A DNA stretch of 64,000 nt from Monocercomonoides exilis PA203. Lineage: Eukaryota > Protista > Preaxostyla. The translations under genes were made by a program, and so were the position numbers. The notes under the pieces are model-generated. The model did not search any database and was not told where the DNA came from. It was given only the letters and a program-made list of their open reading frames with translations. Shown piece after piece: positions 8,572 to 54,576 of the stretch. Within the stretch, counting starts at the first letter, position 1. The number at the start of each line of letters is the position of its first letter. Location: the NCBI GenBank assembly GCA_001643675.2, contig LSRY02000016.1, positions 124,001-188,000 on the forward strand, given 5' to 3'.

Positions 8572-11500
8572 ATGAAAAGATGCATTTTTGTATTTTGCGT
8601 GATAGTTTGCCTGTACGAAGCAAAATGTGATGAACATAATTGTTGCTCAATTATTTCTGCAAAAGTTGATGCGACTAACTCAACAGTTGATTTTCATTTT
8701 CACACATTCATAAACCTACCTCACAGCCCAATAATTCGATGCAGGAAATCTTCAAGAATAAGCTTTAAAAACAGCTTGTTAAGAAATTGTATCGATGTTG
8801 AATGCTTGTTAGAAATTAACGAAGGGTTAATAGATTGCTCAAATATTTCCTTTTCGCACTCTGGTAGACCGACAAATGTATTTCCTTCCTTTGCATTATC
8901 GCCTTTTCAATGGTCAAATTTCATACTTCAATATTCAGCCATTACAAATTTAGTAGTCGAAGATTATTCGTATCTTTTTAAAGGAATGTTTGCTTATAAC
9001 TCAATGAAATTCAACTGCTTCTCGAATATTTCGTCAAATTTTTTACCAAAACAAAATGAAAAAAATGAATCTTTAGTAAGTTCAATCTCTTTAGAAACAA
9101 TTATTAAATGCAGCAACTTTAGAAGAGCAGATGAAAACTTAAATTGGATTATGCCAACACAAAGGAGTCAGTACAAATTATTGAAAGCTTTGAACAGCAC
9201 ATTTGTTGAATGCAAACATTCTTTAAACAGTGGAACCCGCGAAATGTTGAATGAGACGACCATATTGAATGATTGTTCATGGTCAGATTGTTCGGCCGAA
9301 GGATTAACTGTAAAGGAAGCTAACGGAGGAGCAATATATTTATATGGTAATGGAACAGCAGATCTTTCTATAAACAACTGCACATTTAGCAATTGCAGCA
9401 GCTTAAATTCTGGAGGTGCTATATATGCAGATAATGTTGGCACTATAAATGTTAATGAATCAAGATTTATGCAATGCCAAGCTGGAAATTTTGGAGGATC
9501 TATATCAGTTCGTGATATTCAAACAAAATATAGTTATTGCTTCAACAATTTTGAAAATTGTACAGCGCTTATTTTCGGTGGTGCTGTATACTTCAAGAAC
9601 TATACAGCCAATAATCAGGTGAATATGAATGTTGCAAAAAATTGCTCTTCAAGTAGTTATGGTGGAGGATTTATGCATCATGATTCAGACTATCCAGCTC
9701 CCTTTTTTAATACATTGACAATGAATTGCTCATCAATAACTGGAGGAGGATTATATCTTTTTTTTCAAAAAATACCACAAAATTCGGAAATTCAGCTCTT
9801 CTTTTTTTGCGCTTTTTTCAACAATACGGCAGAAAGTGGAAACGACATTCGTCTTTATAATAAAGATAATTTAACTGATGAATTAAATCCCACTGTTGGA
9901 TGCTTAACAACTTCAGTTGAAAATCAAGTCTGCATGTGGGCTACTGAAGAAGAAATTGTTAATTGGATACCAACGACACTTGAATCACGCTTGGTGAATT
10001 TTGAGAATGGTTTAGATATTGATGTTTGTGGGCTTGAAATCAAAAAATGCAGAACAATAGGGTTCACTGTGACACAAGCTCGACCGTCGACCAACTTTTC
10101 GATCATTCTGGAGAGCGCTCTGATAAAAGAAACACAGATAATAATTGGCGAAAACATTGTTTGTATCAGTCGAAAAAACGAAACATTCGTTCCAGAGATA
10201 GAATGTTGTTCAACAAATGGATCTTTCTTTCAAGTTGGGACAGGGTCTCTGAAAATCGAAAATATCGTTATTGTTTTGAGTCAAAATGCTTCTCCAGAAA
10301 TTACCATTTTTCATAGCACGAACTCAGGCGAGCTTATTATACACAATTGCATTATCAAAGGAAGCTGTCCTCCCACTTCAAATAGCCTGACCGCAGCTAT
10401 TTTTTCTGGATGTAATTCAAAAACAGAAATTGGAATGTGTAATGTTTCTTCTTTTTTCCTTTCTGGCAAGCCTGTTTTTGATATTAAGCCATGCTCTTTA
10501 CAAGCACCTTCACTTAATATTTCTAATACAACATTTTCAGACATTTCAAGAAAGACCGGAAGCGGATGTATCTTTGAAAAAGTTATTGAAAGCGATGAAC
10601 TGTTTTCAGTAAATGATGTTATTATTGAGGATTGCACAACAGAAGATGGAAATGGTGGTGGATTTTGGATTGAGTCGAATTATGGAAGTTCGCTGAGAAT
10701 TGGCGTGAGCGAAAAAGAGACCTCATTCAGCAGGTGCTCATGCAAGAATTTATTACCAGGAAACGGATATGGTGGAGGAATGTACCTTAAGTTTGACAAA
10801 GGTGCAAGCGATTTTATTGTGACAAGCACTTCCTTCACTGAATGCAGCGCATCAAAAGGAGGATCAAATATCTTCATCGAATGTTGGTGCCTGAAGGAAT
10901 TAATAAATGCAACTTCTTTAAACTTTTCGCGAGAAGATATGCTAAACAGGGATTTAATGGGATTTGAGGAAGGAAATGAAAACGCTCCAATCGAATTAGA
11001 AGCATTTTTTGTTGAATTTAATGGAACTGGATATGTTTGCGGAGATAATGGTTGTGACTTTAGTGGTTGTGGAACATATTCATATCCTTGTGCATCATTA
11101 TCACATCTTATTTCCTTACGATTTGAATTGATAGATAGAAATATAATTATAAATTCAATAGTGACGCTTGAAGAAGCAATTGAGATGAACGATTTTGAAT
11201 GCGAAATGACTGGTGTAACAACTACTACTCAATTCGATGTTTATCCTTCTTCAAGTATTTCTTCAGGGAATGTTATTAGTATTAGAAATAATGCAAATCT
11301 AATAAATTTATGCTTTTCTCTTCATCCAAGTTTTTCTTCTGCATCTGCTTTCATAAAATTTGTACCATCAATTGAAGAAGACAAATTATTAAGGATCTTT
11401 TCTTGCTCTTTTTCTGGTATCTCTGGATCTGAGATATCATATGCCATTATTTCATCAACAAATGGAAAGATAACAATCAGTGAATGCACTTTATCTGAAT

Positions 11501-14500
11501 TATTATCATCATCTTCACTGATGCTATTTGAATCTACAGTTGAAATAAATCAATCACATTTCCGAGATACTTGCGCGCCAAGCAGTGTTAAAGGTGGGGC
11601 GTTAAGCGTTTATTTAAAAAAGGGTCAATGTTTTTCTTTGAATGAATCAAGTAGCAACAACTGTGAATGCTCAAATACATCTGGAAAAGGAGGTTTTGTA
11701 TACTTGAATGCGTTCCTTTCAATTCTTGAAGAGCCGTTTCTATTTAAGACATGCAGTTTTGAAGGAAATTCTGCATTTCTTGGGAAAAACATATTTTTAG
11801 AAGTTAACAATCTGAGTAAGTCTGTATCGATGAATACTTTAAATATAAATTTCGATGGCATGAATTACGATGAGAACCTTTTGATTGGAAACGACATAAT
11901 TTTTACCAAGCCTATAGATCTCCTTCACTTTTTCATCCCTCGTGTGTATTCTAATGTTTATCTTTCGACTGTAAGTTTCGATCTGATAGGCTGTGGAAGT
12001 GTGGATGTGCCGTGCAAATCATTCGGAAAGGCAATAAATCAAAGAGATATGAATCTTTCAGAATGGACAATTTATGTAGGAGATACTGCTATAATTAATG
12101 ATCACTTTAATCTTTCAAATTGCTTTTTAAAGCCTAAGTTGCAAGAAAACAATAAAGATAGTGTCAGATTTTATCTTCAATCTCACGCATCAACGGGAGA
12201 AGTTCCTTCAATGAGTAATGAAGGAAGTCTTTCATTTTTGGATATAGCCTTTCGAATAGAAGCTGTTGGAACAAATACTCTAAAAACAATTGTGATAAAT
12301 TCAGGTGATTTGCTTTCATTTGCTCATTGTTCTTTTGAAAATGTTGGAAATGAGGCGGATCAAAACGATTATTCTATCGTTATTATGAAGAAGGGAAAGC
12401 TTCAAATTGATGATATTTCGATTCAAAACAACAAGAACAAAAAAGATGCTTTTGTAATTTCATTTGGATGCGAATCTGCTTTTAATAATTTGGAGATTAT
12501 TTCAAGTTTTATCGATGAAGGAGGTGCTATTCGCATTGGTGCTGATCAAGAATCGTTTCATAATGAGCAAATAATAATTACACATATACTTATCAATGGA
12601 TCAACTTTCAGATCGATTGAAAGAAGCAACAAAGGAGCAAGTGTTATCCAGTCTGAAAAGGAAGGAGAGCAAGTTGATTTAAACATAAATGATACTTCTT
12701 TTGAATCTTGTTCTGCTCCTTCTTCAACAAGAGGAGGCGCAGTGATGTTTTCATTGCATGAAGGAAGATCTCTGAGGATTACCGACAGTACCTTTACGCA
12801 ATGCAATTGTAGTTACTCGAATGGAAGAGGAGGTGCATTGTTCATTTCAGCGAAATCTCACAAAGAGCTCGATTTTCTTTTAAATCGCGTATCTTTTGCG
12901 TATAATCTGGCTCATGTTGGCTGGAACGTATTTGTGGAATGCTATAACATATCCTCGCAGATCAATGAAACACAATTTAAACTCGATTTCAGAACAATTC
13001 CATCGCAGCTGCATTTGTTCTCTGGTTGTGATACAACAGATCACACTGATGATACAGATCTGATGCAGTTTATTACGATCTATCAGGATTCCACCATCGT
13101 AGTGTCAAATGCACCAAACAAATCTTCCACAAATTCGAGGCTATGCGGAAGTTACGAACAGCCTTGCATTTCTTTGGGTTATGCACTTGAACACTTGGTC
13201 CACACATTCGAGAGCAGGCTAATGATTGACCAGCAAACGTTCATTGAAAGCGAAATTGATTTGAAAAACCTTTCAATGCATGCGCTTAGCACAGAACAAA
13301 GCAATGTGAGTTTTTCATCAGATCTTTCGAAGACTCGTGATTCACTTTTGAACACATTCTCAAGAGTTATTATTGAATCCATTTCATTTAAGTTTTCTCC
13401 TCAGACGCATTTAATGCATAACGTTATTTTCTATGCTGTGAATGGATCTTTGAAGATTTTGTCATCCACATTTGAATCGACTGATTTGACTTCAATTGCT
13501 TTTGCTTCGCAATTATTTCGAATATCTGCAGCATCATTAATTATGGAAAAGGTCAGATACCAATTGTTATCGCTTCATTCTATTGTCAATTTTCAAGTTG
13601 AGAGTTCTTCATTAAGCATTTCGGACATTATATTATCCTCGCTCATCTTATCGGATAATGCAATAAACTTTTTCAAAATATCTGAAACGACATTCGTCAC
13701 CAATGTTAGAGTTTTTAACACCAGCCTGCTTGGAGGCTCAATCATTTATTTTCATTCTTCTGGCAATGCACATCTTGAGGTTAGCAAACACACAAGAACA
13801 TCTTTTTCTCTTCTAAATTTTGCAAACATTTCATCTGCTGGTCCATCTGGTTGTGCTGTTTTTATCGAAAAGTTAACTGACGCTCCTCTTGACATAATTA
13901 ATTGTTCTTTCAACAATTGTTCTTCATCGAGTGAAAAAGGGAATACAATTTCAATTCATTCTTCAAAAGATATTTTGTTCTCATCGTGCTCTATCAGCGG
14001 AAGCAATGACCTCCCAGAAACGGATGAGAAAAATCATGAAACGAATGAAAAATTTGGAGAAATATGCAAATGGAGCGGATCTCTTGTGGATGCAGTGAAC
14101 AGCTCTGTTGCGTTGAAAGATACAACAATCGAAAATTCATCTACTGGAGGCATGACCATTTCTGGAGGGAATATACTTGTTGAAAAAGGAGAATTTATAA
14201 ATAACAGCCCGTCAGTAGAGAAGTATCCATCTGTTCGCAGAAACATCATCTGCGCAGATTCTGGAGAATTGAATGTTATCAGCTATAAAAATGGAGATGG
14301 ATTAATGAACGATACATCATTTTGGATTCTGAATGAAGGATGCCAACTGAAAGGAATTATCAGTGATGTGTCTTCAGTTTTGTTTATTCCTTCTCTTCGT
14401 CATGTGAAGGCTGTTGAAGAAGACGATGTGTTGAAACTTAATTGCACAGGATCTCTTCTTTTGCCTTGTGGACTATCTTTGCTCTTCATCACGAAAGTGG

Positions 14501-16110
14501 AAGATCTTCATATTAAAGAAAACTATACTTTCGGAGATGAGGATTATGTTTCAGAAACGGAAGTACATGCAAATATTCCATCATCAGCAATTTCTTCTGC
14601 ACCTGCAGAAGCTGAAGTTTTTATTTCAATTCAATTTGGTGGGCTTTCATCATCATCAACAACAGCACAATGGATTTTAAAGAACAAGACAGAAGTGCAG
14701 ACAAATTTAACAGACAATATTGTTAAAGGAGAAAAGAGTTCAAGTTCATTGTGGATAATAATTGTGATAGTGATGTCAGTAATCCTTTTTATTATTCTGA
14801 TAATTGCGGTTGCTTTTATTGTTCGGTGGAAGAAAGCAAAGAGAAGAACAGAAGAGCTTGAGGTGATCGTGGAAGATACAGTGAGGAAGGATCCAAAGCT
14901 GATTGAGATGATGACGATGGAGATGTCGCCAGAGGAGCAATGGCGAAGAACAAAAAGGGAGGAAGCGAAAAAGAATGAAGAGAGGATTAAGAAGAGAGTG
15001 TACGAGAAAACAATTCAGCATTCAGAATCATCAGAGTATTTGTTGAGCGAGAGCGGTTCAACTGAATACATCCTTGGGAGAGATTCAGACAAGATTCCAG
15101 AATGGGTGCTGGAGAAAGTTGATGAGAAGGAAGAAGATGTTATTTCAAGGAAGCGAACTCCATCACCATCCATTTCATCCACTTCAACCACAGACACTTC
15201 AGATACAGAATCCACATTTGTTCGATCAGAGAGTCTGTGCCCAACCACGTCATCCATGTCGAATCTGGTGGATGCAATGGCATGCTCATCGCCACATGAG
15301 AAGCTGATTGTGGACCTTAGGGATTCGCTGTTCATGTTGCTTCACGGAAGGAACGAGAAGAAAGAAATGGCAATTGACACTCTTCAGGAGAGAGAGCAAA
15401 CAGCTGCTCAAATCCTGTTCTGGGTGGCTAATCTCGCGCTCCACTCATTTGATGAAATGGATAATCCTCTTTCTTCACTTGCCAATCTCAGTCCTCACAT
15501 TGTTCTGTTCTCCGAGCATATGGTCATCGCCATTGCTATGCACTCTGATTGTTCTTCAGACTCAGATTCATCTTCCATCTCTTCTGCCTCGACAATTGTT
15601 TCATCCTCCTCTGATCAGAAATCCTCAAATAGAAATGGAAAAAGTTCACCACCACCTTCATCTGCATTTGAGGATGATGAAGACAACAGGAAGGAGTGTA
15701 TGAGATGGAAGGCACCAGAGCTGATGATTAACAGAAATGCAACAGCTTCAAAAAAAACAGTTTCATTCTCGATTGGGATGATGCTTTGGGAATGTCTAAC
15801 ACTCCAAATCCCATTTGGAGAATATGAGGCAGAGGTTGCTGGACAGAAGATTGTCAACGGAGAGAGGCCAAGCTTGGAAGCAATTGATTCTTCTACTTAT
15901 TTTGAGTCAGTTAGATCCTGCTTATCAGAAAATTATGATGACAGACAAAGCTTAATTAGATTGAAACGAGAATTTATTCAGCACTTCCCAGCTGGTGCTG
16001 TGATAATGACAGTATCCGATGCCGTCGACTTTGCAATCAGCGGCAGAGATAAAAAGAGTGACTACGCTTCGACAGAAGCTGAAGATTTGTCATGTAGTTC
16101 CTTTTTTTAA
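8572..16110 (+). CDS. Large type I membrane protein (2512 aa): signal peptide, beta-helix/pmp-like GGA(I/V) repeats, CG..x..PC repeats, one TM helix, cytoplasmic degenerate kinase C-lobe
   Basis: Hydrophobic N-terminus; repeated (N/S)GGAIY, GGGxY and GGAL motifs; CGTYSYPC, CGSVDVPC and CGSYEQPC; TM LWIIIVIVMSVILFIILIIAVAFIV followed by RWKK; kinase subdomain VIII-XI remnants RWKAPE, FSIGMMLWECLTLQIPF and GERP. Confidence 0.8.
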   Translation: MKRCIFVFCVIVCLYEAKCDEHNCCSIISAKVDATNSTVDFHFHTFINLPHSPIIRCRKSSRISFKNSLLRNCIDVECLLEINEGLIDCSNISFSHSGRPTNVFPSFALSPFQWSNFILQYSAITNLVVEDYSYLFKGMFAYNSMKFNCFSNISSNFLPKQNEKNESLVSSISLETIIKCSNFRRADENLNWIMPTQRSQYKLLKALNSTFVECKHSLNSGTREMLNETTILNDCSWSDCSAEGLTVKEANGGAIYLYGNGTADLSINNCTFSNCSSLNSGGAIYADNVGTINVNESRFMQCQAGNFGGSISVRDIQTKYSYCFNNFENCTALIFGGAVYFKNYTANNQVNMNVAKNCSSSSYGGGFMHHDSDYPAPFFNTLTMNCSSITGGGLYLFFQKIPQNSEIQLFFFCAFFNNTAESGNDIRLYNKDNLTDELNPTVGCLTTSVENQVCMWATEEEIVNWIPTTLESRLVNFENGLDIDVCGLEIKKCRTIGFTVTQARPSTNFSIILESALIKETQIIIGENIVCISRKNETFVPEIECCSTNGSFFQVGTGSLKIENIVIVLSQNASPEITIFHSTNSGELIIHNCIIKGSCPPTSNSLTAAIFSGCNSKTEIGMCNVSSFFLSGKPVFDIKPCSLQAPSLNISNTTFSDISRKTGSGCIFEKVIESDELFSVNDVIIEDCTTEDGNGGGFWIESNYGSSLRIGVSEKETSFSRCSCKNLLPGNGYGGGMYLKFDKGASDFIVTSTSFTECSASKGGSNIFIECWCLKELINATSLNFSREDMLNRDLMGFEEGNENAPIELEAFFVEFNGTGYVCGDNGCDFSGCGTYSYPCASLSHLISLRFELIDRNIIINSIVTLEEAIEMNDFECEMTGVTTTTQFDVYPSSSISSGNVISIRNNANLINLCFSLHPSFSSASAFIKFVPSIEEDKLLRIFSCSFSGISGSEISYAIISSTNGKITISECTLSELLSSSSLMLFESTVEINQSHFRDTCAPSSVKGGALSVYLKKGQCFSLNESSSNNCECSNTSGKGGFVYLNAFLSILEEPFLFKTCSFEGNSAFLGKNIFLEVNNLSKSVSMNTLNINFDGMNYDENLLIGNDIIFTKPIDLLHFFIPRVYSNVYLSTVSFDLIGCGSVDVPCKSFGKAINQRDMNLSEWTIYVGDTAIINDHFNLSNCFLKPKLQENNKDSVRFYLQSHASTGEVPSMSNEGSLSFLDIAFRIEAVGTNTLKTIVINSGDLLSFAHCSFENVGNEADQNDYSIVIMKKGKLQIDDISIQNNKNKKDAFVISFGCESAFNNLEIISSFIDEGGAIRIGADQESFHNEQIIITHILINGSTFRSIERSNKGASVIQSEKEGEQVDLNINDTSFESCSAPSSTRGGAVMFSLHEGRSLRITDSTFTQCNCSYSNGRGGALFISAKSHKELDFLLNRVSFAYNLAHVGWNVFVECYNISSQINETQFKLDFRTIPSQLHLFSGCDTTDHTDDTDLMQFITIYQDSTIVVSNAPNKSSTNSRLCGSYEQPCISLGYALEHLVHTFESRLMIDQQTFIESEIDLKNLSMHALSTEQSNVSFSSDLSKTRDSLLNTFSRVIIESISFKFSPQTHLMHNVIFYAVNGSLKILSSTFESTDLTSIAFASQLFRISAASLIMEKVRYQLLSLHSIVNFQVESSSLSISDIILSSLILSDNAINFFKISETTFVTNVRVFNTSLLGGSIIYFHSSGNAHLEVSKHTRTSFSLLNFANISSAGPSGCAVFIEKLTDAPLDIINCSFNNCSSSSEKGNTISIHSSKDILFSSCSISGSNDLPETDEKNHETNEKFGEICKWSGSLVDAVNSSVALKDTTIENSSTGGMTISGGNILVEKGEFINNSPSVEKYPSVRRNIICADSGELNVISYKNGDGLMNDTSFWILNEGCQLKGIISDVSSVLFIPSLRHVKAVEEDDVLKLNCTGSLLLPCGLSLLFITKVEDLHIKENYTFGDEDYVSETEVHANIPSSAISSAPAEAEVFISIQFGGLSSSSTTAQWILKNKTEVQTNLTDNIVKGEKSSSSLWIIIVIVMSVILFIILIIAVAFIVRWKKAKRRTEELEVIVEDTVRKDPKLIEMMTMEMSPEEQWRRTKREEAKKNEERIKKRVYEKTIQHSESSEYLLSESGSTEYILGRDSDKIPEWVLEKVDEKEEDVISRKRTPSPSISSTSTTDTSDTESTFVRSESLCPTTSSMSNLVDAMACSSPHEKLIVDLRDSLFMLLHGRNEKKEMAIDTLQEREQTAAQILFWVANLALHSFDEMDNPLSSLANLSPHIVLFSEHMVIAIAMHSDCSSDSDSSSISSASTIVSSSSDQKSSNRNGKSSPPPSSAFEDDEDNRKECMRWKAPELMINRNATASKKTVSFSIGMMLWECLTLQIPFGEYEAEVAGQKIVNGERPSLEAIDSSTYFESVRSCLSENYDDRQSLIRLKREFIQHFPAGAVIMTVSDAVDFAISGRDKKSDYASTEAEDLSCSSFF

Positions 16111-18953: not shown

Positions 18954-19873
18954 TAATCGAAATGCTATTGGTTTGGATTAAGTGTGATTTGATAATTATT
19001 TTAAACAGAAATTTGAAACACACAATGAAATTGCATTCTTTTTTGAATCTTTCGTCAAAGCAAAATAGCTTTTAGGAAATTTCCCTTTTAATCCGAATGA
19101 TACACCAAAAACAATTCAAAATGCGAATTTTTGCAATTGAATTGTTAATTTCAAATACTTTCAATTTTTAATATATTTAATGAAAGAAATACATTTAAGA
19201 GAAAAAAATAAAAATTTTCGAATTATTTTCTCACTCGTAAAGTTTATTTCAAAGTCATAATAATTCCAATGATTTTGCAAATTTTGATTTTTGAAAAAAG
19301 TTTCATGTCGCAACTAAAAATGATCACTTGGACATCAGTCATTATTTCGAATACAAAAATGAAACATAATATTAATTTCTTAAAATAAGTTTTTTGGGAT
19401 TAATATGTGTTTATTCAAAAATTCAATAGCATAACATTAGAATATATTGCTTAATTAATTATCTATCTTGTTGAAATGAAGATAGAATAACAAAAATAAA
19501 ACCTGAAAAGAAGAAAAGTTTAACTTCGATGTGATTGCTTAAACCTTATGATTAAAGATATTCACTGAATAGCCAGCAATACAATAATCATAAAATATGA
19601 ATGAATAAATAAAATTCTTTAACTCTTGAAAAACTGAAAATACAGTTGAAAAAATGAAAAGAAAAGAAAAAAGAAAATAATTCGCAAAAACTAACATTTC
19701 TAGTTACGATTCACAGGCCACAAGCTCGTATAAAGCCGCAGTCAGTGTTGAAATAAAAGAAAAGTTGACAAAAAAAAAAAAAAGAAACATTAATCAAATT
19801 AAAGTCCTACTGAAAATACGAATCAAAAAAGATCTGGAAAATACATTACATATTCAAAAAGGACGCCACAAAT

Positions 19874-22800
19874 TTATCCTTTCTTTTCTATATTTGGCAG
19901 AATTGATTGTTCCATCAATCCTTCTTTTGTTGCGGTTATTTGAACGTTTTGCTCTCGATCTTGAATGCCATCAAGACGCTGTTTAAGTTCTGAGAAAGAC
20001 ACATTTGGCTCTTTCTGCATAATTTCAATCATATGCTTTGAAAGCCATCCTGTTTGTGTTCCATCACCAAACGTAAGTTGTATTGCTGATTGATCGGCAG
20101 CAGAAGCGCCAATGTGAATGGCATTGAGTAGCTGCTTGTCTCTCCGCACATTTCTAAGCTTTACCATTTTATCAAGATTGAACAACGAGCCTGCATGGCA
20201 GCACTCAGAGATTAGTACGATTCGAGTGTTTATGGATGCTTTGTTGAGGATGAGATCGAACAAACACCAATCAATCACCATTCCTGAAAACACACCTCGT
20301 GCTGTCGATTGAAAAGGAAAACAATCAGAGAAGAGAGATGAGGACAAAGAAGTATCTGCTTGCGAAGATGAAGCACTCAATGCAGTCTTGTTTGCATCAG
20401 TCATTTCCGTTGTGTTCAATTGAGCCTGCTCTTCTTTTTTTGGAAATGAATAAAATGAACTCTTCCCTGTTTCATTTAATCCTGTCGGATCTGAAATTTG
20501 CCCTCCATGTCCAGAAAAGTATTGAACAAATTCTTTTCCAGAATGATCAACAAGATATTCCATCCACCGATAATACTCAGCTGCTGAACTGTCACACGAA
20601 TAAAAGACCACAAACCCCCTGCTTTTCAACAATTCGGCAATTAATATTCCATCAGTTAGAGGGCCGATTCCCAAACTATTCGATTTTCCTTCATAAGGAT
20701 TGAGAAACAAAGCAGCTAAACGAGAAAATCGAAGTGTTTTTGGAAGTTGTGTTTCGCAAATGCGCTTCAGATTGATGCATCCCAAAGAATCCAAACGCTC
20801 GAGGTATTTTGAATGCTCAGTGAAAGAATAATCAAAAGGCTTTTTCAGAAATGCGAGTAAATTCACCCATTGCTTTTTTTGTTGTTCTCTTTCTATTTTG
20901 GAGGGCGATGCATTTGCTGTTGTTGGTTTCCGTTGAGAAGAACACTGTGCGGAAAGAAGAGGCTTTGCAGATGGTGAAGAGTTTTGAGAGCAATTACTGC
21001 CATGCGTTTTCATTGATGTTGCACTTGCATCTGAAGCGGCAGAACCTAAAACTCTTTGGCAAAGCTGATCAGTTAAATCACTGACTTGAATTTCTCTCTC
21101 TTTTCCTTCAAGACATCGAATAATTGGAGTTTTTAGCAATGCTGAGTTTGTCGTTGTTATTTGAGGATGCATTGAATCTTCCAAAGATCGATTCAAATAC
21201 TGCAAGATATCTTTCCATTGAATTTCAACGTGCTTTTCAAGAATAGAAATAAAACTGAAAAAAAATGAATCGAAATAATCGTCATTTGAATAACCCATCA
21301 TGGACAATCCTTCTTCAGATGAACAAGCGCTGATATGGATTGCATTCCAACGTGTTGCTCTTTCAATCATCAGCATCTCATCATTTTCATATTCCCTGCT
21401 CAATCCATCCTTTGAAAACTTTTCTCCTTCTTCAAGAAGAAATACATCGCCAGCATAAGAAGCTAGAGTTACAAGGACAATTCGTGCACCAGCACAATGA
21501 GGGTTCTTTTTAAACAGCTTGTGCAGAACATCCTCTGCGAGATAATCTTCTCCATTTCCAAGAAGAGGCTTTCTCATCCCTTTCCCAAAGAAAGTTGTTG
21601 TTGTTGCAGTATCAAGCCCAGCTTGAATAGCTTCCTTTTTCCATTTATCTTTTTCGTCTTCAGGCATAAAGCAAAGGGCTTTCTTTTTCTTTTTTTCTTT
21701 ATTGTTCGTAGTTATTGCAACAACTTCTCCAATAAAAATTGATGCCAATTCTTTTTTTACAGTTCGTAGAAGCCATTCCATCCAGTGATAATACTCAGTT
21801 GCAGTGGGATTCACAAAATACAGCACTCGATATCCTCTCTTTTGGTAAAGCCGGGCAGTTTGAATTGCTTGATTCATCTTCTCTTTAATCCTTGTTTCTG
21901 GAGAAACCAAACGTTTTTCAGATTCCTGTGGTGCTGCTTGTGGAGATGAGGTCGAAGCAGTAGTCGATGCTGAAGAAGAAGTCGATGCGGAAGAAGACTT
22001 GTTGATAGAATCACGAAACTAAGACATATCATTCGTGGCAGCTGCTGGCACAACAAGGAAAATTGCGCAAACATATCTGAGTGAAATTGATGGGAATGTT
22101 TTTGGAGTTATACGATCGAGATTGAAGAAGCCTTCAAAATCAAGACGCTGCAAAAATGGATTCAATACAGTAAAATATTTCACAGGCTTCTTCATTTCGA
22201 ATGAAAACTTTATAAAGCGAGATAATTGGTCTTTGGAAGTGTCAGGAGAAGAGAATGAAGTATGACGAATGAGAAGTTGTTCCATATCGTTCAAGTCGTC
22301 ATACACATCGTCTTCTTCTTCTTCAGGCGAAGTTTGCTTCGGAGAACCCATCAAATTCAAATAAAACTTGTTTGTGATATCGCTAAGTTGAAGCTCCCTT
22401 TGAGATTTTGAGAGTCGGCAAACAATTTTACTCTCAAGTAATTCATCAGCTGTTGCAGATAATTGCGGGTGCTGATCGAGTGGCATTAGTGGCTGAAGCG
22501 AGCTTAGCAGCTGTTTCCAATTGAGTTCCATATTTGCATCAAGCAGCTCAACAAATTTCAAAGCAAATGAATCAATAGATGAATCTTTGGTTATCACAAA
22601 GTTGGCAGTTTCCCCAATATTGCAAGAGCTAATGTGAACAATTTTTGGTATTTGTTTGCGAGATTTATTTAAAAGTCCTTCAGAGTTATGCTGATTGTCT
22701 GTTGCTAGTTTTGAAGTAAATTGTCTAAGATTATAAATATCGCCACCAGATGGCGCAGAAGTAATAAAAGTCAGCTTTGCAACTGAGTTTCTTGAATTTT

Positions 22801-25800
22801 TCGTCACAAGATGATGCAAAAATCCTTCCGTAATATTATTATTAATTCCAGTAACTTTTGTCCTTATTCCTTTTCCATACGGAACAGCTGCTGAAATTTG
22901 TGACGCACCTTTCCCGTATTTTTTCTTCAGTGCTGCCAGCCACTCATCCTTCACGCTCTCCTCCACAAAACATAATCCACTTGACGTATTTGACGAGCGT
23001 AGTGTATATCCTCCTGATACGCTGACTGTTGTCCCACAATAAATGCAAACAAGATCTGTCTGAACAGCATTCATCAGCCACTTGACCCAGCTGAGATATT
23101 CCGTTGCTGTCGGATGCATCGAATACAAAACACGATATCCTCTTTTGACGAAGAATTCAGCCAAAAATAGCCCACTTCCAACAGGGCGTGAACACGTTGA
23201 AGAAGAAGAGGAGGAGGAGGAAGAGGAAGAAGCAGCTTGACGATGCGAAATATTCTCTGCTGATGGAACCATAAAAATTGCGCAAACATAACGAAAAGAA
23301 AGAAGTGGAAATGTTCTTGGCGTAATTCTATCAAGATTTATACAGCCCATTTTATCTAATTCTCTTTCTTGTTCAGCCCAAATGGAGTCATAATCAACCG
23401 TCTGACTCATCTTCAATGCAAAGTCTATGAATTGTCGCTTGCGCTCGTCTGTGTTATCTTGCAATGCAAATTGCTTTGCTTGAAGCTCGAAGATATCATC
23501 ATCATCTTTTTCTTCTTCCTCCTCTTCTTCTTCAATACCTCCCACTAATTCAACAGATCCAACACATCTTATGCATTTATTAGACGATGGCTTTGGACAG
23601 CCAAGCACTTTCATATGTAAATTATTTGTGATTTCTGTTGCTTGCAGTTCTCTTTCTTTCTTAGAAAGAAGAGGCAGCACAGGCAATTCTTCAAGAGTGC
23701 TATTTGCAGCAGTAATCTCCGCATGCTGTGAGTTCCCCAGCAGCAGCTGGATGTGTGAAGCCATTTCTTTCCAGTCAATCAGCGGGTCAATTTCCAGAAG
23801 AGATAAAAAGTGTTTGGTGAAAGAATCTTCTTTTCCTCCATCAGGCTTAAAACTTACGTAGCGTGACTCGTCCGCTCTACTCGATGCAATATGAATAATG
23901 TTTGGTCTCGACAAAATTGAGTCACCTGAAGATCTTTCGCTCGAAGATGGCAAATGACCATCTCCGGAGAATTGAACCAAAGGACGAGACATCGTTTTGT
24001 TTGAAGAATCGTCTGAAGCAGCAGATGCACTTAAGCACTCATCAATCTGCGATAATCCAAAAATATCACCCACACCAGATGAGCAAGTAATTAACACCAC
24101 GCGCAATCCTGGTTTGGGCTTATTCTTCATTAAAAGCTCACGCAGATAGCTGGTGCGGATGTAATTGCAGCTTCCGATGCCCTCCACCTGCTTCCTCATT
24201 CCCTCTCCGCTCAGCTCGGCAACTATTCCCACTTCTCTCCTTTCACTTCTCATTCGATTTATCCATCTGTCTTTTTCCTTGTCATTCATAAAACACAAAG
24301 CTGCTTCTGAATTACTTGAAGTATTCGCAGCGGAAGATGCAGAACTTGACTGTAACGTAGATGACTTCTTTGTGCTGTCTATAATATCGACAGTGATGCC
24401 AACGTAGACAGAAACAAAGTCAACTTGCACATTCTGCAGAAGCCACTCCATCCAGCGATAGTATTCAGATGCCGTTGGGTCTGCAAAATAACCAACGCGA
24501 TAGCCTCTCCTGACAAAAAGCTGCACATAACTCATTCCTTGTTCCATTGCTTCGTTCATCTTCTCCTTCATCTTGCTTCTTTCTCCTGCATCAACAGGCT
24601 TTCCATCCGATTCGGTTGCATCATCTGGGTCAAGATGGTATCGGGATGTGACAATAAACACGGCTGCAAAGTGGCCAAGGCGAATCGAAGGGAAAGTATC
24701 TAAAGTGAACCTGTTGAGGTTTATGCAGCCCAACCTGTCAAGCTGAACCATGTATTTTGCACAAGCAGATGGATATGCAAAGGATTGTTGCATTTCCAAC
24801 AGAAAGGAGATTTCTCGTTTCAGTTCCGCTTTTCGTTGAACTGTAAAAGATTCAAGAATGTTTTGCGTTTTTTGTTCCCTTTTCTGCTTCTTTTTTTCTT
24901 TGTGCAAGCTTTCCTCTTCATTCGCATCACTTTTTTCTTTCGAATTTGTGGAAGAACGCTTTTCGGGTATTTTTTCGTCCAATGTTGGATTTCGATTAGG
25001 TTGCCCCTTTCCAGATATTTCTGCAAACATGGCTCTATTTTTCTCTCTCAGCTTGTCTATTTCACTTGCATTTCCCCTGCTTTTGTCACTTTCCATCAAA
25101 TTTAACTCTTTTTCTTTTGATTTCTTGCTATTTTGTATTCTCTTTTCATTTTCTATTTCATTGTTTGTTTTCCTTTCTCCTTTCAATTGCTCTGCTTCTT
25201 TTCCTTCATCCTTGTCTCTTTCCTTTTTCTCTTTTTTCTTGTTGTTACTCAAGTTTGAAGGATTAACACGAAGATCTCCACCAACCTTAGGCTTTTTTGA
25301 ATCAACTAAAATGTTACTCTGCTGCTCTTTATTTTCTTCATCATCTCCTTTTTTTCCTTCTTCCTTCGGTTTTAGTGAAAAATTCCCGCTATCACTTTTT
25401 CCTTTATCTAAATTTTCTTTCCTTCTTCGGAATCTTTCCCGATTTGTGTAAAGTTCATGTGTCACATCATCATCTGAATCAGGTTTTGCGGGATTATTAT
25501 CAACATTTTGATCATTGTTACGCTTATTTTCCTTTTTGCATTCACCAAAAGCTCCGCCTTTGTTCCCAATCTGACTTCTTGCTCTTTCATCTTTCCCTGT
25601 TTTGTTCTGTCTGTCTTCCCTCTTCAATTCGCATGAAGAAGATGCTTCTGTTGCTTCTGGAGCATCCGAAGATTCTTTTCTCAGCCATTTTGCTTGGCAT
25701 CCGTTGAAGTGCACATCAAATAATTTCTTTGAGAAGAATTCTGTGTTGCACATGCAGCAGAGCAGATGAGTCTTATCGGAAACTGGTTTTTCTTCCGTCA

Positions 25801-27735
25801 GCTGAACTTTTCTTTTTGTGCTTTCCTGATTCCTTTCACGTGACCTCTCTTTCTTTTGGCTGCTGCATTCATCTTGCTCATCGTTTGACAATGGAAGTAC
25901 TGATTTGCTCGGAACAGACCGCAAGCTGTTTAGAGAAACATCTTGCTTCACTGTTACTTCAAGAGCAGATGGAAAAGTTGGAAATGGAAAGGAAGGTGAA
26001 GGCGATGATGAGTGAGACGAGTTAGAAGAAGATGGAGAAGGCAGTGCTTGATTCTCCGCACGAGGAATGCGTGTGTGAGCATGATGTTTTTGCTGAGTTT
26101 CAGTGTCTGCATTTGGAATATGAGAAGTCTGGACTATTTCAACAGTAGTCTTTGTTGGAGTGTGATTAGCAATGTCTGCAGAAGATGATGTTGGCTGAGG
26201 GGAACGTGGTGCTCCATTGGCTGCCGTGCGAAGGCCCTGTTGAATGCGATTTTTGCTTTCTCCTGTTTTTGCTCCTGTTTTAAAAGTTGCCTTTTCATCT
26301 GTGATTTCTCCACTGGTTTTTTCTGGTTTTTCGGGTTTCTCCTTCTTTGCTCCTTCTTTTCTCGCTGAAGGTCTGTCATCTATTTTATTCTCTGTCAGCC
26401 CACCATCACAATCACTAGAGAATGTGCTAGCCGTTGAACGCGTTTTTGAATACTCCTCTTTTGCCTCTGAAGTTGCTCGTCTCTTTTTGAGTGATGGTGC
26501 AGGAACCCTCAACTGTGGCGAATACGAAGACGAAGAAGTTGAAGAAGAAGTTGATGTTGATGATTCTGCATCTGCTGAATGCACAGAATGCTTCAATGGA
26601 AATCTGAATGTTCTGAGCCTTTCGCTAAGCTGAGATAGTGTTGGTCGCTTTTTTGGATTCTTATTGCATTATCATGTTTTTTAACAATGAAAATTCAAGA
26701 TCATAAAAGTGAACTTCTGGTTAAAATCCTCTAAAATATTATTTAGCGTCAAACTTCTTCCAGAGTGTCGATAAATAACTGCATCAGCGGTTCTGAAGGA
26801 TCAGTAATATCATTTTTACTGAAATTTTTCATCGATTCTCTAACCGCATTTGAATCAATTCCTGTAAAAATGGGTTTTTTCGAATGAGCATAAAATATCA
26901 GTGATCCTAATGAAAACGCATCGCTTGCGATTGTAGGCCTTTCATTTAAACAAACATGCATCAAGATATTTTTTGTTAAAACATTCAAACCTACAACCAT
27001 CAATTATCTCGGGAGCAATGAAAGATAATGTAAAAGGTGATGAATGAGATGATAGAAACTTTGACGGAAAAAAGGATGCCAATCCAAAATCATCTTTCTC
27101 AAAAATTAATCGAAGGAATTTTAAAACAATTCAAACTTATTTTCATATCCATGTTTTCATTGATAAAAACATTTTCAGGATGGAGCCTTCCATGCACGAT
27201 ACCAAAGGAAGCAATGTAATTAAGTGCATCAATTGCTTGCATTGCAAATTTTAAGATGAACTGCAAAAAAATAAAATATTTTATTAAATTGAATTATCAA
27301 ACTTTCGAAGAAATAAGTGTTGCAATTTCCGGATTATTTATTGCTGCGAAAAGCGAAGTATCTCCTTGATCTTCTGTTAATGCGTGACACATACGCTCAG
27401 TTATTATGCACCGTGTATAACGAACAATTCCCTTGTTATGATAGTGAGTCAGATTCGTAAATTTAGATTTGTTATCCTTGTCTAAATTTATATTTTCTCG
27501 TTTTATTCGTTTCCAAATAGATATTTCGCCTGTTTTCGTATATCTTACTCTTGAAGAGGAACCAAGAGTTCCTTTTTTGAGAGAATTTACAACCTCATCT
27601 GAAAAATTAGTAATTTTTATTCAAAAATAATATTAACTTCATAGCCATAAAATAAAAAAGAATATTTATACAATCATTTCCCGATTTTTTTGCTGGTGAA
27701 TCCGGTTTAGCAACTTCACTCATGATCTTGCCCAT
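19874..27735 (-). CDS. Pseudokinase + C2HC zinc finger + four tandem metacaspase-like (peptidase C14) domains; single in-frame TAG at 22019-22021
   Basis: Predicted exons 27735-27672, 27598-27303, 27260-27137, 27093-26991, 26938-26755 and 26659-19874 splice in frame through GT-AG introns. They give a kinase fold (KGTLG, IWKR, VHGRLHPEN, DFG, APE, SDAFSLG, LEE|NPKKRPT). Four repeats begin with LDxxG(C/F)(I/F)NLxR; only repeat 4 has YFSGHGG and SECCHAG. ORFs 22019..26596 and 19874..21910 are in the same frame, separated only by the TAG and 36 sense codons. Confidence 0.8.
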
Positions 27736-27878
27736 TTCTAAAAATATCTCTTCAAAAAAAGTAAATTCGAGCTAAATACTTATTACAGTAACATTAGTGA
27801 GTATGATGATGATCTTTATTAAAATTAGAGTAAAATAAATATTAATAAACTCCAACTCCAAAAGAAAAATCAAAAATA

Positions 27879-30102
27879 TTATTGTTCTTTTGGAAGTGGA
27901 TTCTTTTTTGAACTTATTCTTTGACTTTTTAATTCACTTGCTAAGGTTCTTGAAGTTCTTCTAGAAGATAATGCAGAAGGGGAAGATGAGATCTGGCTTT
28001 GCCTCATTTCCTTCAGTATTTGCAATTCGCTTTCAAGGCGGTTGCATTCGCTTGCCAATTGGACGTTTCGTTTTCTCAAAGCATCTGCCCCTTTCTTCTC
28101 TATTCTAATTTCTTCCTCTTTCTTTTGCAGCTCCCTTTTAGTTTTTGCTCCTTCTTTTTCTTCTCTCTGCAGCTCTTTCTCGATTTCCCTTTCTCTCCGC
28201 TCTGCCGCCGAGGCTGAAGACTCTGCAAGCTTCTGCTGGTGCCTTAGAAGCAGCGTCTCAGCTTTGCTGCGCCGAAGAAGCACAGAAAGTGAATGGGGCA
28301 TTTTCGTGGTGCTCAGCGAAGACTGCCGGAAATTCAAATTTCTCGGATGGTGCGGCTGATGCTGTTTGGAAGACAGGGGAAGAGATGAACTGGATGAAGT
28401 TGAAGCAGATGATGATGCTGATGATGATGATTTCTTAATAAGCGCATCTATTTCATCTTTTGAGAAGCATTGGAGATGATATGGAGATGCAGTTCTTGTG
28501 TTGGCTTTTGATGTCTTTTTGCTTTTCTTCTTCTTCTTCTTCTTCTTCTTTAACTTGTCCATTTGAAGTGATTTTAGTTGAAGATTTTTAATGTTCATTG
28601 GTGAAATGATTCCCGTGTTTGCTTTGGATTTGTGTGAAGATCCTAACTGTGATTGCATCTGATGTGCTTCGTCCGGAGCTGAATGCAAACTTTTGTCATA
28701 TTCATTACAAGCAATCACAGAACAATTTGCAAAAGAATCGTCTCTTTCAAATTCATCGTTATCATCGTCTTCTTCTGAGTTATCATCTTTGTCTTTTTCT
28801 CTTGTTTCTCTGGCTTCTATCTTTAGCTCCTCTTTCTTTCGGTGCTTTTCACGTTCCCACAATATCGACAGCAGCGTGTGCATCATTGCTTCAACTGTTT
28901 GTGGAGAAAGCGAAGAATCAGACTGTTCTTGGGAAGCACTTTCTGCTCGCATAGTTCCTGTCGATGTGTTTGAATAGCCAGAAGGCGATGAGAGAGGAGA
29001 AGGACGAAAAGTGGAAGAGTTCTCGAAATTTGAGCTTGGCATAGTTTTGTTCATAGACTTCCATTCTGCAGGTGCATCAACTGCCGCAGGGCTTCCAGAC
29101 AGAGGAGATCGATAAGGGCTGTCTGACGTAATTGGCTTCAAGGAAGTTGGTGTTATTGTTGATTGAGGTATCGCTTCAGTTATTGAATTAGCCAACTTCG
29201 AATTAGATTGGTATTTATGATCGGAACTATCGTGAGAATTCGTTGCAAAAACAGATCCAAGCATTGGCGAATGGATTTCTTCTTTGGTCACATTTTGATA
29301 AGAGTCTGTAATGTTTGATGTTGGATTAAAAATTTTATTATCTAATCTACTTGCAGATTTTATCGAGTCATGTGAGTTCATTGTGGAATGAAGTGCCGTT
29401 GGGGATGTAGACATTGAAGAAGCAAAATCTGCAGGAGATGGCGAACTTGAATGGCCAAAATCCAAAGGCAATGAGTTGGATACAGTCAAATATTTATTTG
29501 ATTCGTGAAATGAATGAAATGAAAATTGTGATGATATAGGTGGCGGTGGAGGTGGAGGAGGCAGCAACAATTCAAAAGAGGTGGATACTATGTTTCGCTG
29601 ATATGTTTCTTGGCCAGTATTTTGTTCGAAAGCACCTGATGATTTTAAAAATGAAAATGAAGAAATTCCATCTTGCTGAGAAAAATTAAAAATAAAACAT
29701 TTGTTCCTAAAAAGAATTACGTACAGTAGGTGAGTTCGGGTGGATGTACACATCATCTTCTATTTGCTTCTGAATGAAAGAATCTTTTGAATTTTGATCA
29801 ATTTCTCTTTTCTCCGTTCTTTGAGTTTGATCAAAATCATAAAGACTAGAAGGGAAGCGTGGAATATGGATGCGATGTCTCAAATGCTCTTTACGTTTTT
29901 CATCATTTCGTTCAAAAGAAAAGAAAGTTGAAAGTGGTTGAATTAACTTTGGTTCGATTGTTTCTTTCGTGGGAAAATCAAATTGTGAATATAAATGATC
30001 GAAAATGCAAACTGTATTGCATGTTATTCAGACGGTCGAACTTTTTGCAATTTAAAAACAGAACACTTATTTAAATAATTTTAGCATTGATCGACTTTCC
30101 AT
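27879..30102 (-). CDS. Hypothetical Ser/Pro-rich protein with C-terminal coiled coil; multi-exon, start uncertain
   Basis: 625-codon ORF. A GT-AG intron 29724-29676 joins it to an upstream open exon (...DDVYIHPNSPT|QDGISS). The ATG at 30102 is only a candidate start. Confidence 0.55.
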
Positions 30103-39088: not shown

Positions 39089-42000
39089 TCAAGTAGGCTC
39101 TTTTGATACCGAAATTTCGCGAACTTTGCGGAGAAAATGCTTCGAAACACGGCAATACGAATGGAAAATTTTGCGGTCCTCGCTTTTTGCATCGTCAGAA
39201 TTGATGAAGACAAGCAGCGAGGGCGGAAAGCAGATGTTGTAGAAGTCGAGCGAGTCAACTTCTTTCTCCAGCACGGACAGCGGCGCGTTCTCCTTCAAAT
39301 ACGTCGCTGCCTCGCGGTCTATTTTCATCACGTGCTCCGAAAGCCACGCCCGGATGAAGTGCACCAGATGCTCCAGGGCCTTGTCTGAGTCCAGCTTCTT
39401 TGTGCCCAGCTCCATCAGCCGCATGGCCATGACGATGTGGTGCGCCTCGTGCTGCCTGAGGAACGAGTGGGGCAGAGAATACGCCTGCATCAGCTGCTCC
39501 TCGTTGGCAAAGTTGCCCAGCATCACATTCACAAAGCGCAGGAACGCCACATGCGTCTCAGCCGCATCCTCTCCTTCCATCGCCACAGCTGCATCCAGCG
39601 CAGCGTTGCAGGCAACCAGATGGGCAGAGTCGAAGAGGTTGGCATCGATGTTGTACTTCTCGTTCCACCGCATCGTGTCAAATGTCGTGTCATTCACTGG
39701 ATCCAGCTCCATAATCGTCCCTGTCGTTTTGGAGATGTAGAAGACGTGCCGTCGCATGGGAATCATGCACACAACATACGAAACAAGAAGTATCACCCAG
39801 TGGATCACAAACATCAGTATGAGCAGCACTCGATACGAATTCACAATGCTTTTCTGCTCGCGGATGAGAGCGACGCTGAACTTGTTGATTCCGCCTGTCA
39901 GATCATATTGTATTGCAGTGTGCACCATCTGCAGCCTCGTGTCATTCAGCATCAATTTCGACACATTCGTTTCTGAGGCAAATGACTGTGACTGTGTCAG
40001 AAACGCTGTGATGAGCCCTTCCAAACCAGCATACGGCGGCTTCATCCCATAAATCCTGTCTTTGTTGTCGCAGTCTGCTCTCCAGGGGTTCTCCAGGCAG
40101 TTTGTCTGGTCCATCATCAGCTTGCTGAAAGAAGACTGAGGCACCAGCGTCTTCCGCACAGAAAGCCCATCAATTAGCTCGTCTCCAGTGATTGCACCGT
40201 ATTTGGATGGCTTTGCACCTTCGCACAGCCGCTGGTGGATGAGAGTGAAAAAGGAGATGGTTTGGTTGATCAGCACAAGCTGCAGCGTCTTGTTGGGCGA
40301 CATGTGGGACAAGTCGTGCCAGAGAGGGGCGGTTCCATATGGATACTCGTAGTTCACAGGAAGATCTTCCAAAACAGGATCAGCTGCATTCACCATCGAC
40401 GACGCACAATGCCCGACAAGAATGAAACGATATGCTGACAGCAAAACAGCAGAGTTCATGTCTCCACACGCCTTGGCTGTTATGATGGCAATGATGTAAA
40501 AGGCCTCAGCTGACCCGATGATGAGGATGGCGCCAGAGAGAATCTCAAAAAAAAGCCGAGGTGACAATACCATCACATTCTTGCTGATCTGCGCAGCACG
40601 CTCCTCCCGCAGCTCCTCGTCTCGTTTCTCTTTCAGCTGCTGCTGGTGCTCTTCGGACTCTTTCAGTCCGTATGGATCAGTTGACATGTGCTCTGTCTTG
40701 TTCTTTGGTGTCAGCGGAGGAATTCGCGAACTCTGTGCAGATGAAGTGCTGCTGGCCACTTTGATGGCATCTTGTTTGGCTTCCAGATGATGAGGTGTTT
40801 TCTGCTCGTGTTGTGATGCAGTGTTGGGAGACAAATATTCGTGTGTGTGGAATCCACTGGGGTAATTCATCGATTCGTCTGCTTTGCTCTCGTGTCTGCT
40901 TCTGCTGCTCTTCTTGTTGCTGTTGCCTTCTGCGGCAGATGATGTCGACAGGCTGTTGTTGTTCAGAGGAATCAGATAGAATGGCTGGGTGTCTGCTGTC
41001 TGCACAGTGGGCGCTGTTGATCGAGATGCATTTGAAGTGTGGCTGTGAGTGCTTTGGGGAGTTGTTGGGAGGAAATGAGGTGATGCTCTGTTGGGTGTGC
41101 GTGAAGGTGAAGGAATAGCTGGGGGAGAACCTGAAGGTGAATTGGAAGAAGAAGCAGAAGAGGATGATGATGAGGAAGAAGAAGAAGATGGTTGAGAAAT
41201 GGCATGTTGTGGAAGATTGCTTCGATGGTTTTGAGGTGTTTTTGAAGTGCTCATCAGAATATCCAATCTCTTGTTAAACATTTCGTTGTAGTCGTCATTC
41301 ACCATCTCAATGTCCTTCAGGAGTTTTGAGCTGGATGCTCTGCTCATCCAAGTTGCTGTGTGTTCGGTGAATGAAGCAAGAGCAGCGTCGTGCAAAGAGC
41401 CGCCTTCTTCTCCTTTCTCGTCGTCTGGGTCAAAACCCGGGTCCATTTTCTGCCGATTGATCAGCTTCAGCACTTTCTTCTTCGGAGCAGAAAAGAACTC
41501 TTCGAGCACATACCTCCGCTCCACCGACAGCTTCCGCACAGATTTGAACACCTCAAACCAGAACAGCACGCAGGCAAAGAAAGTGATGGTTATCCCGACG
41601 ACAGAGGTGATGATGTAGTATAAGTTGATGTCCTTCTGTGCGTGGATGATGCAGATGACGATCAGCTCCTTCAGATGCTCCATCATCGTCACAGGCACAT
41701 TCGCCTTCAACCACACGATGATGTCCACTGCCATCTGCAGCGTCAGCACCGCTGTGTCTGTCTGCGGCAGGTCGAGCGCCCAGTTCTGCACATTCTTCAC
41801 CATTTCGATGATGTTCGCCTTTCGCCATGTCAAGTCTTCCACTCTTGTGCGGTGGAGGTGGATGACAATTTGGTCGAGCACTTCTCTTTCGAGCATCCTT
41901 CGCTCGTGCTCGTGTGGGATGAACATGTTGCTATAGAGCAGCCGCTGAGAGAGTGTGTTGGAGTCCATGTGAAGTGCATCAGAAATAACAGAGTGAGATG

Positions 42001-54329: not shown

Positions 54330-54576
54330 CCAAGCATAGTTTTCGCATAATCGCTGCAATAAAGCTTTTGAATTCGGTGAATTCATCAATCCACAATTTT
54401 TAAAATCTGTTCATGAATAAATTATGGAAGGCTTTGTTTCTGGATCAAACTTGTAAGGGATTTTCCTCTTGGTAAAAATTTGTTTGTATTTTCTTTATAA
54501 CACAAAAATTTTGTTAAAAAGTAATGTGTTTCCATTTTATTTATTATATTACTATATATACATAAAGAACAGATAC

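Follow-up and report, generated by a model that had tools for sequence, protein, structure and literature searches.

Metacaspases of types I and II (TbMCA2, Yca1, AtMC4 and AtMC9; MEROPS C14B) are the best matches in sequence (E 1.5e-17) and in fold (Z 23.9) to the gene studied here, which shares their SGHG and D/E-x-C-H motifs. It differs from them in its tandem repeats, its fusion to a kinase, the partial loss of the calcium aspartates and a short, strandless segment after the catalytic Cys. The nearest sequence outgroup consists of parabasalid-type proteins (Tritrichomonas musculus KAK8845013.1; termite-derived AFZ78842.1). They share the short post-Cys loop and the N-terminal motif, which a first-pass annotation had likened to trichomonad metacaspase-like proteins and which holds as a parabasalid-type motif, but they are single domains of ~280-360 amino acids (aa) with better kept calcium aspartates and no kinase. 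The gene lies on the minus strand at 19874-27735 of a 64,000-nucleotide stretch of contig LSRY02000016.1 of the oxymonad Monocercomonoides exilis PA203, hereafter the window. Two metacaspases have been counted in M. exilis, and they are not these fusions (PMC7539657). Each part is known and dead/live pairs of clan CD domains are precedented, but within the searchable literature tandem or kinase-fused metacaspases of oxymonads turned up in no paper.

The architecture is a pseudokinase, a disordered linker (which in M. exilis bears a C2HC finger), one or more repeats that lack the His-Cys dyad, and a terminal repeat that carries it. The window copy is the locus on contig 10 (C10); its paralogs are likewise named by contig (C30 and C29). 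An in-frame TAG interrupts C10, and C30 is an intact, spliced gene. We consider it moderately likely that the data as a whole are best explained by an oxymonad fusion family in which C10 was recently broken and the intact protein is a regulated signalling protease.

Removing five GT-AG introns joins the exons in a single frame that opens at ATG 27735, closes at TAA 19876 and spans 2518 codons; this reproduces the intron lengths (73, 42, 43, 52 and 95 nt), borders and single frame of the first-pass annotation. The introns have a GC content of 0.14-0.25, versus 0.32-0.41 in the exons, and the last junction rebuilds kinase subdomain XI (LEE/NPKKRPT), as had been proposed. The single protein of ~2518 aa that was predicted is borne out as a frame but not as an uninterrupted chain, because of the TAG at 22021-22019, which had gone unmentioned. 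Exons and pieces were searched separately, and the joined model was used in scripts only, with X at the stop; the full-length kinase match comes from the database paralog P0017, the public C30 protein, not from the joined window model. The features are as follows.

27672..27735, minus strand: exon 1, ATG at 27735; equivalent exon in the C30 model P0017; no RNA coverage
27599..27671, minus strand: intron 1, 73 nt, phase 1; position common to the C30 annotation and Streblomastix strix
27303..27598, minus strand: exon 2, kinase N-lobe with beta3 Lys51 retained; splice model and alignment
27261..27302, minus strand: intron 2, 42 nt, phase 0; RNA joint in 2 runs; common to S. strix
27137..27260, minus strand: exon 3, catalytic loop HGRLHPEN with Arg145 in place of the catalytic Asp; Pfam kinase E 8.4e-5 for the exon alone
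27094..27136, minus strand: intron 3, 43 nt, phase 1, directly before DFG; RNA joint in 4 runs; common to S. strix
26991..27093, minus strand: exon 4, DFG and APE retained; splice model
26939..26990, minus strand: intron 4, 52 nt, phase 2; RNA joint in 3 runs; S. strix lacks this position
26755..26938, minus strand: exon 5, kinase C-lobe; splice model and Pfam
26660..26754, minus strand: intron 5, 95 nt, phase 0, excises TGA 26749 and links kinase and long exon; RNA joint in 3 runs, with the letters of the paralog; common to S. strix
19874..26659, minus strand: exon 6, kinase end, charged linker, finger and four repeats, with one internal TAG; splice model
25697..25759, minus strand: C2HC zinc-finger motif C-x2-C-x12-H-x3-C; from sequence, motif also in the C30 and C29 paralogs
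23660..24826, minus strand: repeat 1, pseudo-metacaspase, His>Ile, Cys>Ser; family profile, secondary-structure order of the model as in repeat 2
22406..23446, minus strand: repeat 2, pseudo-metacaspase, His>Thr, Cys>Pro; family profile; Z 20.6, root-mean-square deviation (rmsd) 2.7, 214 residues aligned to 8a53
21090..22228, minus strand: repeat 3, pseudo-metacaspase, His>Glu, Cys>Ser, broken by the TAG; family profile and model
22019..22021, minus strand: in-frame TAG at codon 1804, within a loop modelled at low confidence that follows strand 1 of repeat 3; the paralog has AAA (Lys); splice model and paralog alignment
19883..20881, minus strand: repeat 4, metacaspase-like, His 20509-20507, Cys 20200-20198; Pfam Peptidase_C14 E 1.8e-6, above cut-off

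A genome search located the C30 paralog, 93% identical to the window gene, at C30:1056022-1064089 (-), with an open frame of 2333 aa. It matches the window over 19489-27752 only, with 91-92% DNA identity, introns included. Its public protein, MONOS_9428 (XP_067724273.1/KAH7820415.1, P0017; 2499 aa), is named 'putative Protein kinase domain'. Like the window gene, it has six exons, the finger and four repeats, with 87% amino-acid identity, and it is the source of the spliced RNA; unlike the window gene, it has Lys at 1804 and no stop, a longer poly-Ser tract, and C14 repeats that went unrecognised in its annotation. P0017 and our own C30 model differ in nothing but a Ser-rich stretch of 88 residues, so the public annotation uses the same five introns. 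The TCT/TCA poly-Ser tract is much longer in C30, and the omission of 88 residues there probably reflects a false intron in an open frame. The four-repeat gene was duplicated as a gene-sized DNA copy, introns included; a retrocopy origin was rejected on account of the retained introns. The duplicated block begins only 17 nt upstream of the ATG, and C10 and C30 therefore share no upstream DNA. The C10 copy starts 144 nt behind the preceding open reading frame (ORF), 27879-29756. The intact kinase fusions on C29 (1.089-1.094 Mb) and C30 (1.056-1.064 Mb) are ~23-32 kb from a contig end. The C30 gene, not the window copy, is the one to study.

The RNA evidence consists of assembled contigs from four metatranscriptome runs of one study, aligned to 21900-27800 (5,901 letters). 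Spliced joints were found for introns 2-5, including 26755/26659 in three runs, and a 1,059-nt contig spans the kinase exons plus 400 nt of exon 6. All 40 of the 40 listed RNA variants carry C30 letters, and in most of the long RNA pieces the difference counts equal those between C10 and C30; the spliced contigs are therefore assigned to C30. The predicted junctions were thus recovered, in the letters of the paralog rather than those of the window copy. A kinase that ends at TGA 26749 is rejected for C30 only, whose spliced contigs cross into exon 6. Intron 1 has no RNA coverage in the four runs and matches the public C30 gene model. A few contigs are of the window type (over 23842-24104 they show 0 differences, against 24 for C30), and RNA at 21951, downstream of the stop, carries window letters. 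On these grounds the C10 copy seems to be transcribed at a lower level than C30, of which contigs are no proof.

The kinase domain of P0017 matches Pkinase (PF00069) with E 3e-29 over 1-258/263, with subdomains I-XI recognisable; on window exon 3 alone the match is E 8.4e-5. The catalytic loop in C10 and C30 is HGRLHPEN, with Arg in place of the catalytic Asp of HRD. The beta3 Lys (IWK), the catalytic-loop Asn (PEN), NDFG and APE are all retained, and by eye the alphaC Glu and the first loop Gly are apparently lost. C29 and three S. strix proteins have Asn in the catalytic Asp column (HLNLWPAN in S. strix). All six kinases compared (C10, C30, C29 and three from S. strix) lack the catalytic base, which makes pseudokinase a fair label, as the first-pass annotation had it. 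From the retained residues, ATP binding is plausible. The charged linker and its finger were also found as described (C-x2-C-x12-H-x3-C at 25759-25697). The finger spacing is retained in the three M. exilis paralogs, with weak zf-C2H2_jaz Pfam matches below cut-off, and the motif is absent from the S. strix kinase-fusion proteins. Between finger and repeat 1, C29 (L021:4571-5191, -) has short acidic EAL-type helices that resemble ubiquitin-interacting motifs, with no Pfam match.

All four C14-like repeats, which lie near where they had been placed, match a family profile built from last repeats (E 6.5e-21, 8.6e-37, 1.8e-27 and 3e-120 for repeats 1-4). Pfam misses repeats 1-3; only repeat 4 passes Peptidase_C14. 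The best matches of the last-repeat profile are Yca1, Candida Mca1 and TbMCA2. Against Arabidopsis metacaspase 9 (AtMC9, 8a53), the C30 repeat 4 model gives Z 23.9 (rmsd 2.3, 217 aligned) and the window repeat 2 model Z 20.6. The AlphaFold model of C30 repeats 3+4 has a mean predicted local distance difference test score (pLDDT) of 72 and a predicted template-modelling score (pTM) of 0.66, with 173 of 784 residues disordered; that of window repeats 1+2 has pLDDT 71 and pTM 0.56. The order of strands and helices is alike in each modelled repeat. The caspase/haemoglobinase fold is accordingly assigned by Z for repeats 2 and 4, and by profile and secondary-structure order only for repeats 1 and 3. 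The dyad motifs that the annotation read in the repeats hold for repeat 4 (SGHG and ECCH; the Cys mutants 4f6p and 4afr served as a check on the Cys column); repeats 1-3 have I/S, T/P and E/S instead. In TbMCA2 numbering (PMC4357240), the S1 residues Asp95/Asp211 are D/E in the window, N/E in C30, N/D in C29 and D/D in S. strix, with the Asp95 column placed by motif. The calcium-site aspartates 173, 189, 190 and 220 are S, D, W and N in repeat 4, so that only 189 is kept. From the Cys to the next core strand, the four modelled repeats have 22-29 residues in helix or coil with no predicted strand, where TbMCA2 carries the two extra strands of its monomeric, eight-stranded sheet. This short, strandless segment suggests, in the models, a caspase-like six-stranded unit able to pair.

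Five C14 loci were found in M. exilis, all of them tandem.

C13: C2 head, live-live repeats
C26: dead-live repeats
C29: pseudokinase, finger, dead-live repeats
C30 and C10: pseudokinase, finger, dead-dead-dead-live repeats

Proteins from Blattamonas, Streblomastix and metagenomes have two repeats, with C2, EF-hand+C2, Pro-rich or kinase heads. P0013 (Logan SRR14212508) is a relative with EF-hand, C2, a dead repeat and a live repeat. The last repeat keeps the dyad in every complete tandem homologue examined, and the first is often degenerate. The architecture search in other Preaxostyla that had been proposed recovered kinase fusions in S. strix (EZS28_006526, EZS28_024266 and EZS28_021491). 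Like the window gene, these and C29 have an Asp-less kinase, a long linker and a dead followed by a live repeat; unlike it, they have two repeats rather than four (EZS28_021491 is partial) and Asp>Asn rather than Asp>Arg. EZS28_006526 shares the position and phase of window introns 1, 2, 3 and 5 (four of the five), which supports the splice model independently. A search among long proteins returned P0017 only, and fusions may exist elsewhere, including in Blattamonas. In a quick maximum-likelihood tree, one clade holds the live repeats from the kinase fusions of both genera (Shimodaira-Hasegawa-like approximate likelihood ratio test, SH-aLRT, 99) and another their dead repeats (95); repeats 1-3 cluster (99), with the C29 dead repeat as their neighbour. 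These groupings argue that the pseudokinase-metacaspase fusion is old in oxymonads, predating the Monocercomonoides-Streblomastix split, and that the four-repeat architecture arose later, when the dead repeat was triplicated. An origin of the four repeats as a doubled dead-live pair was rejected by the tree.

How might the intact protein work? Repeat 4 would cleave, probably after basic residues. The adjoining dead repeat may pack against repeat 4 and serve as its internal partner, either stabilising or restraining it, as in other dead/live pairs of clan CD; the further dead copies could supply additional binding surface. The Asp-less kinase, with Lys, Asn and DFG kept, may be a nucleotide-binding or docking module that replaces the C2 or EF-hand+C2 modules of sister proteins. 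Erosion of the calcium site is greatest in the clade of kinase fusions, which is consistent with such a swap. The fusion that the first-pass annotation read as a signalling scaffold coupling a pseudokinase to a protease is present intact on C30 and in S. strix, but the four-repeat form has three pseudo-domains and one dyad domain rather than four proteases, and C10 is cut before that dyad domain.

Several points weigh against reading the family as a regulated protease with a recently broken C10 member. The proteolytic activity of repeat 4 is a prediction from sequence and fold, and its S1 pocket carries changes: C10 and C30 alike have Asp211>Glu, and C30 has Asp95>Asn as well. How the domains pack is judged by pTM only, from a shallow 22-row alignment (pTM 0.56 for repeats 1+2). 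The tree is a quick search in which long-branch attraction among fast-evolving repeats is possible, and some shared intron positions may be general to oxymonad kinases. As for the TAG, none of the listed RNA contigs from the four runs covers the codon; the assembly authors also describe polishing as imperfect in multi-copy regions (PMC8767320), which leaves an error possible.

The alternative that even the intact protein is a (nearly) non-catalytic scaffold, in which the dyad survives and the pocket and calcium site have decayed, is unlikely. The pocket changes just given, together with Asp190>Trp, Asp220>Asn and Asp173>Ser and the long branches of the kinase-fused repeats, are what it would predict. 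However, all five complete kinase fusions retain His and Cys in their last repeat and have lost them from every upstream repeat, which indicates selection for catalysis, and S. strix keeps both S1 aspartates.

The TAG is the sole stop inside the 2518-codon frame and is upstream of repeat 4; C10 as assembled therefore does not specify a continuous chain of 2518 aa. Two substitutions separate the codon from the paralogous AAA; another two lie within 16 nt, and neither an indel nor a homopolymer is present. Since two substitutions without an indel are involved, we favour a real stop, and it is quite likely that the TAG is both real and disabling. A recent nonsense change would restrict C10 to a protease-less chain of no more than ~1803 aa, consisting, if translated, of the kinase, the finger and two dead repeats, or make it a young pseudogene. 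The domains compared between C10 and C30 have a ratio of nonsynonymous to synonymous substitution rates (dN/dS) of 0.35 (0.28-0.42); for the part beyond the stop the value is 0.31. Neutral evolution since the duplication would have given ~36 stops in C10; 1 was observed, with 0 frameshifts and no excess of amino-acid change relative to C30. The break is thus either recent or not real. A long-dead pseudogene was rejected by the same dN/dS and stop count. An alternative genetic code was rejected as well, with one TAG in 2518 codons and with TAA and TAG used as the stops of long ORFs here, whereas S. strix has 77 TAA/TAG codons in frame.

It strikes us as rather unlikely that the TAG reflects an error in the assembly or a minor allele and that C10, too, encodes the full 2518-aa fusion. 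Purifying selection on both sides of the stop, the absence of frameshifts and the lack of excess change in C10 would fit this reading, as would the window-type RNA contigs upstream, the window letters at 21951 downstream and the polishing caveat. Against it are the clustered substitutions without indel or homopolymer, the ten rounds of Pilon polishing and the ~7% divergence of the copies, which lets 300-nt reads map separately.

It is improbable that the protein is a trigger of mitochondrion-independent cell death, a one-chain analogue of RIPK-cFLIP-caspase-8. Its parts list does resemble death-signalling platforms, but many metacaspases have non-death roles, and the genes neighbouring C10 are unrelated. 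Apoptosis-associated genes in M. exilis count in favour of such a trigger, and that regulated death is untested there counts against it (PMC7539657). We regard a cell-death role of the fusion as possible but unsupported.

Least credible, and highly improbable in our view, is that the stop is used and gates the active domain by readthrough, a cryptic in-frame intron or separate downstream expression (first ATG 21877): an inserted residue or the loss of 19 codons (22054-21998) would be tolerable because the TAG lies in a disordered loop, C10 repeat 4 has the more canonical S1 residue (Asp95), and dN/dS after the TAG is 0.31, but no RNA joint skips the TAG near 22021 in the four runs, cryptic introns that would remove it have weak donors and GC 0.43-0.52 (vs 0.14-0.25 in true introns), TAG terminates other long ORFs in the window, this one is not in C30, C29 or S. 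strix, and to our knowledge TTT 3' of the TAG is no known leaky context.

Other ORFs in the window include a tubulin-tyrosine-ligase-like ORF (54-4376, +), an ORF of 2512 aa (8572-16110, +) that probably contains a membrane segment and whose C-terminal part gives a partial tyrosine-kinase-like match, a TmcB-like TPR ORF (39089-44194, -), a RING-ZZ-RING ORF (44768-49651, +) and a SprT-Zn ribbon-HMG (GCNA/Spartan-like) ORF (52257-54389, -).

The five tandem C14 loci, three of them pseudokinase fusions, compare with two metacaspases counted in a published survey, and the intact fusion is publicly named for its kinase only. The loci and their relatives form a natural series of live-live, dead-live and dead-dead-dead-live proteins with C2, EF-hand+C2, Pro-rich and pseudokinase heads. 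This series is suited to studying the origin of pseudo-protease partners and the way in which a metacaspase can escape calcium control, and it offers concrete targets for the question of caspase-like signalling or regulated death in an amitochondriate. We offer, as a doubtful but specific proposal, that oxymonad metacaspase-like proteins could lack the monomer strands and act as single-chain dead/live caspase-style dimers, switched by a nucleotide-sensing pseudokinase instead of calcium; they would then form a one-polypeptide kinase/pseudo-caspase/caspase signalling platform in an amitochondriate, with C10 as a possible protease-less decoy. Dead/live clan CD pairs are known from caspase-8 with cFLIP-L, and from separase and Csx29, in which a pseudo-protease accompanies an active domain. 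cFLIP is a separate chain, and we know of none of these pairs with a kinase domain or three dead repeats. The fusion resembles caspase-8/cFLIP-L, separase and Csx29 in setting an inactive caspase-fold domain beside an active one, a functional analogy only, with distant folds (Z 15, 9 and 8).

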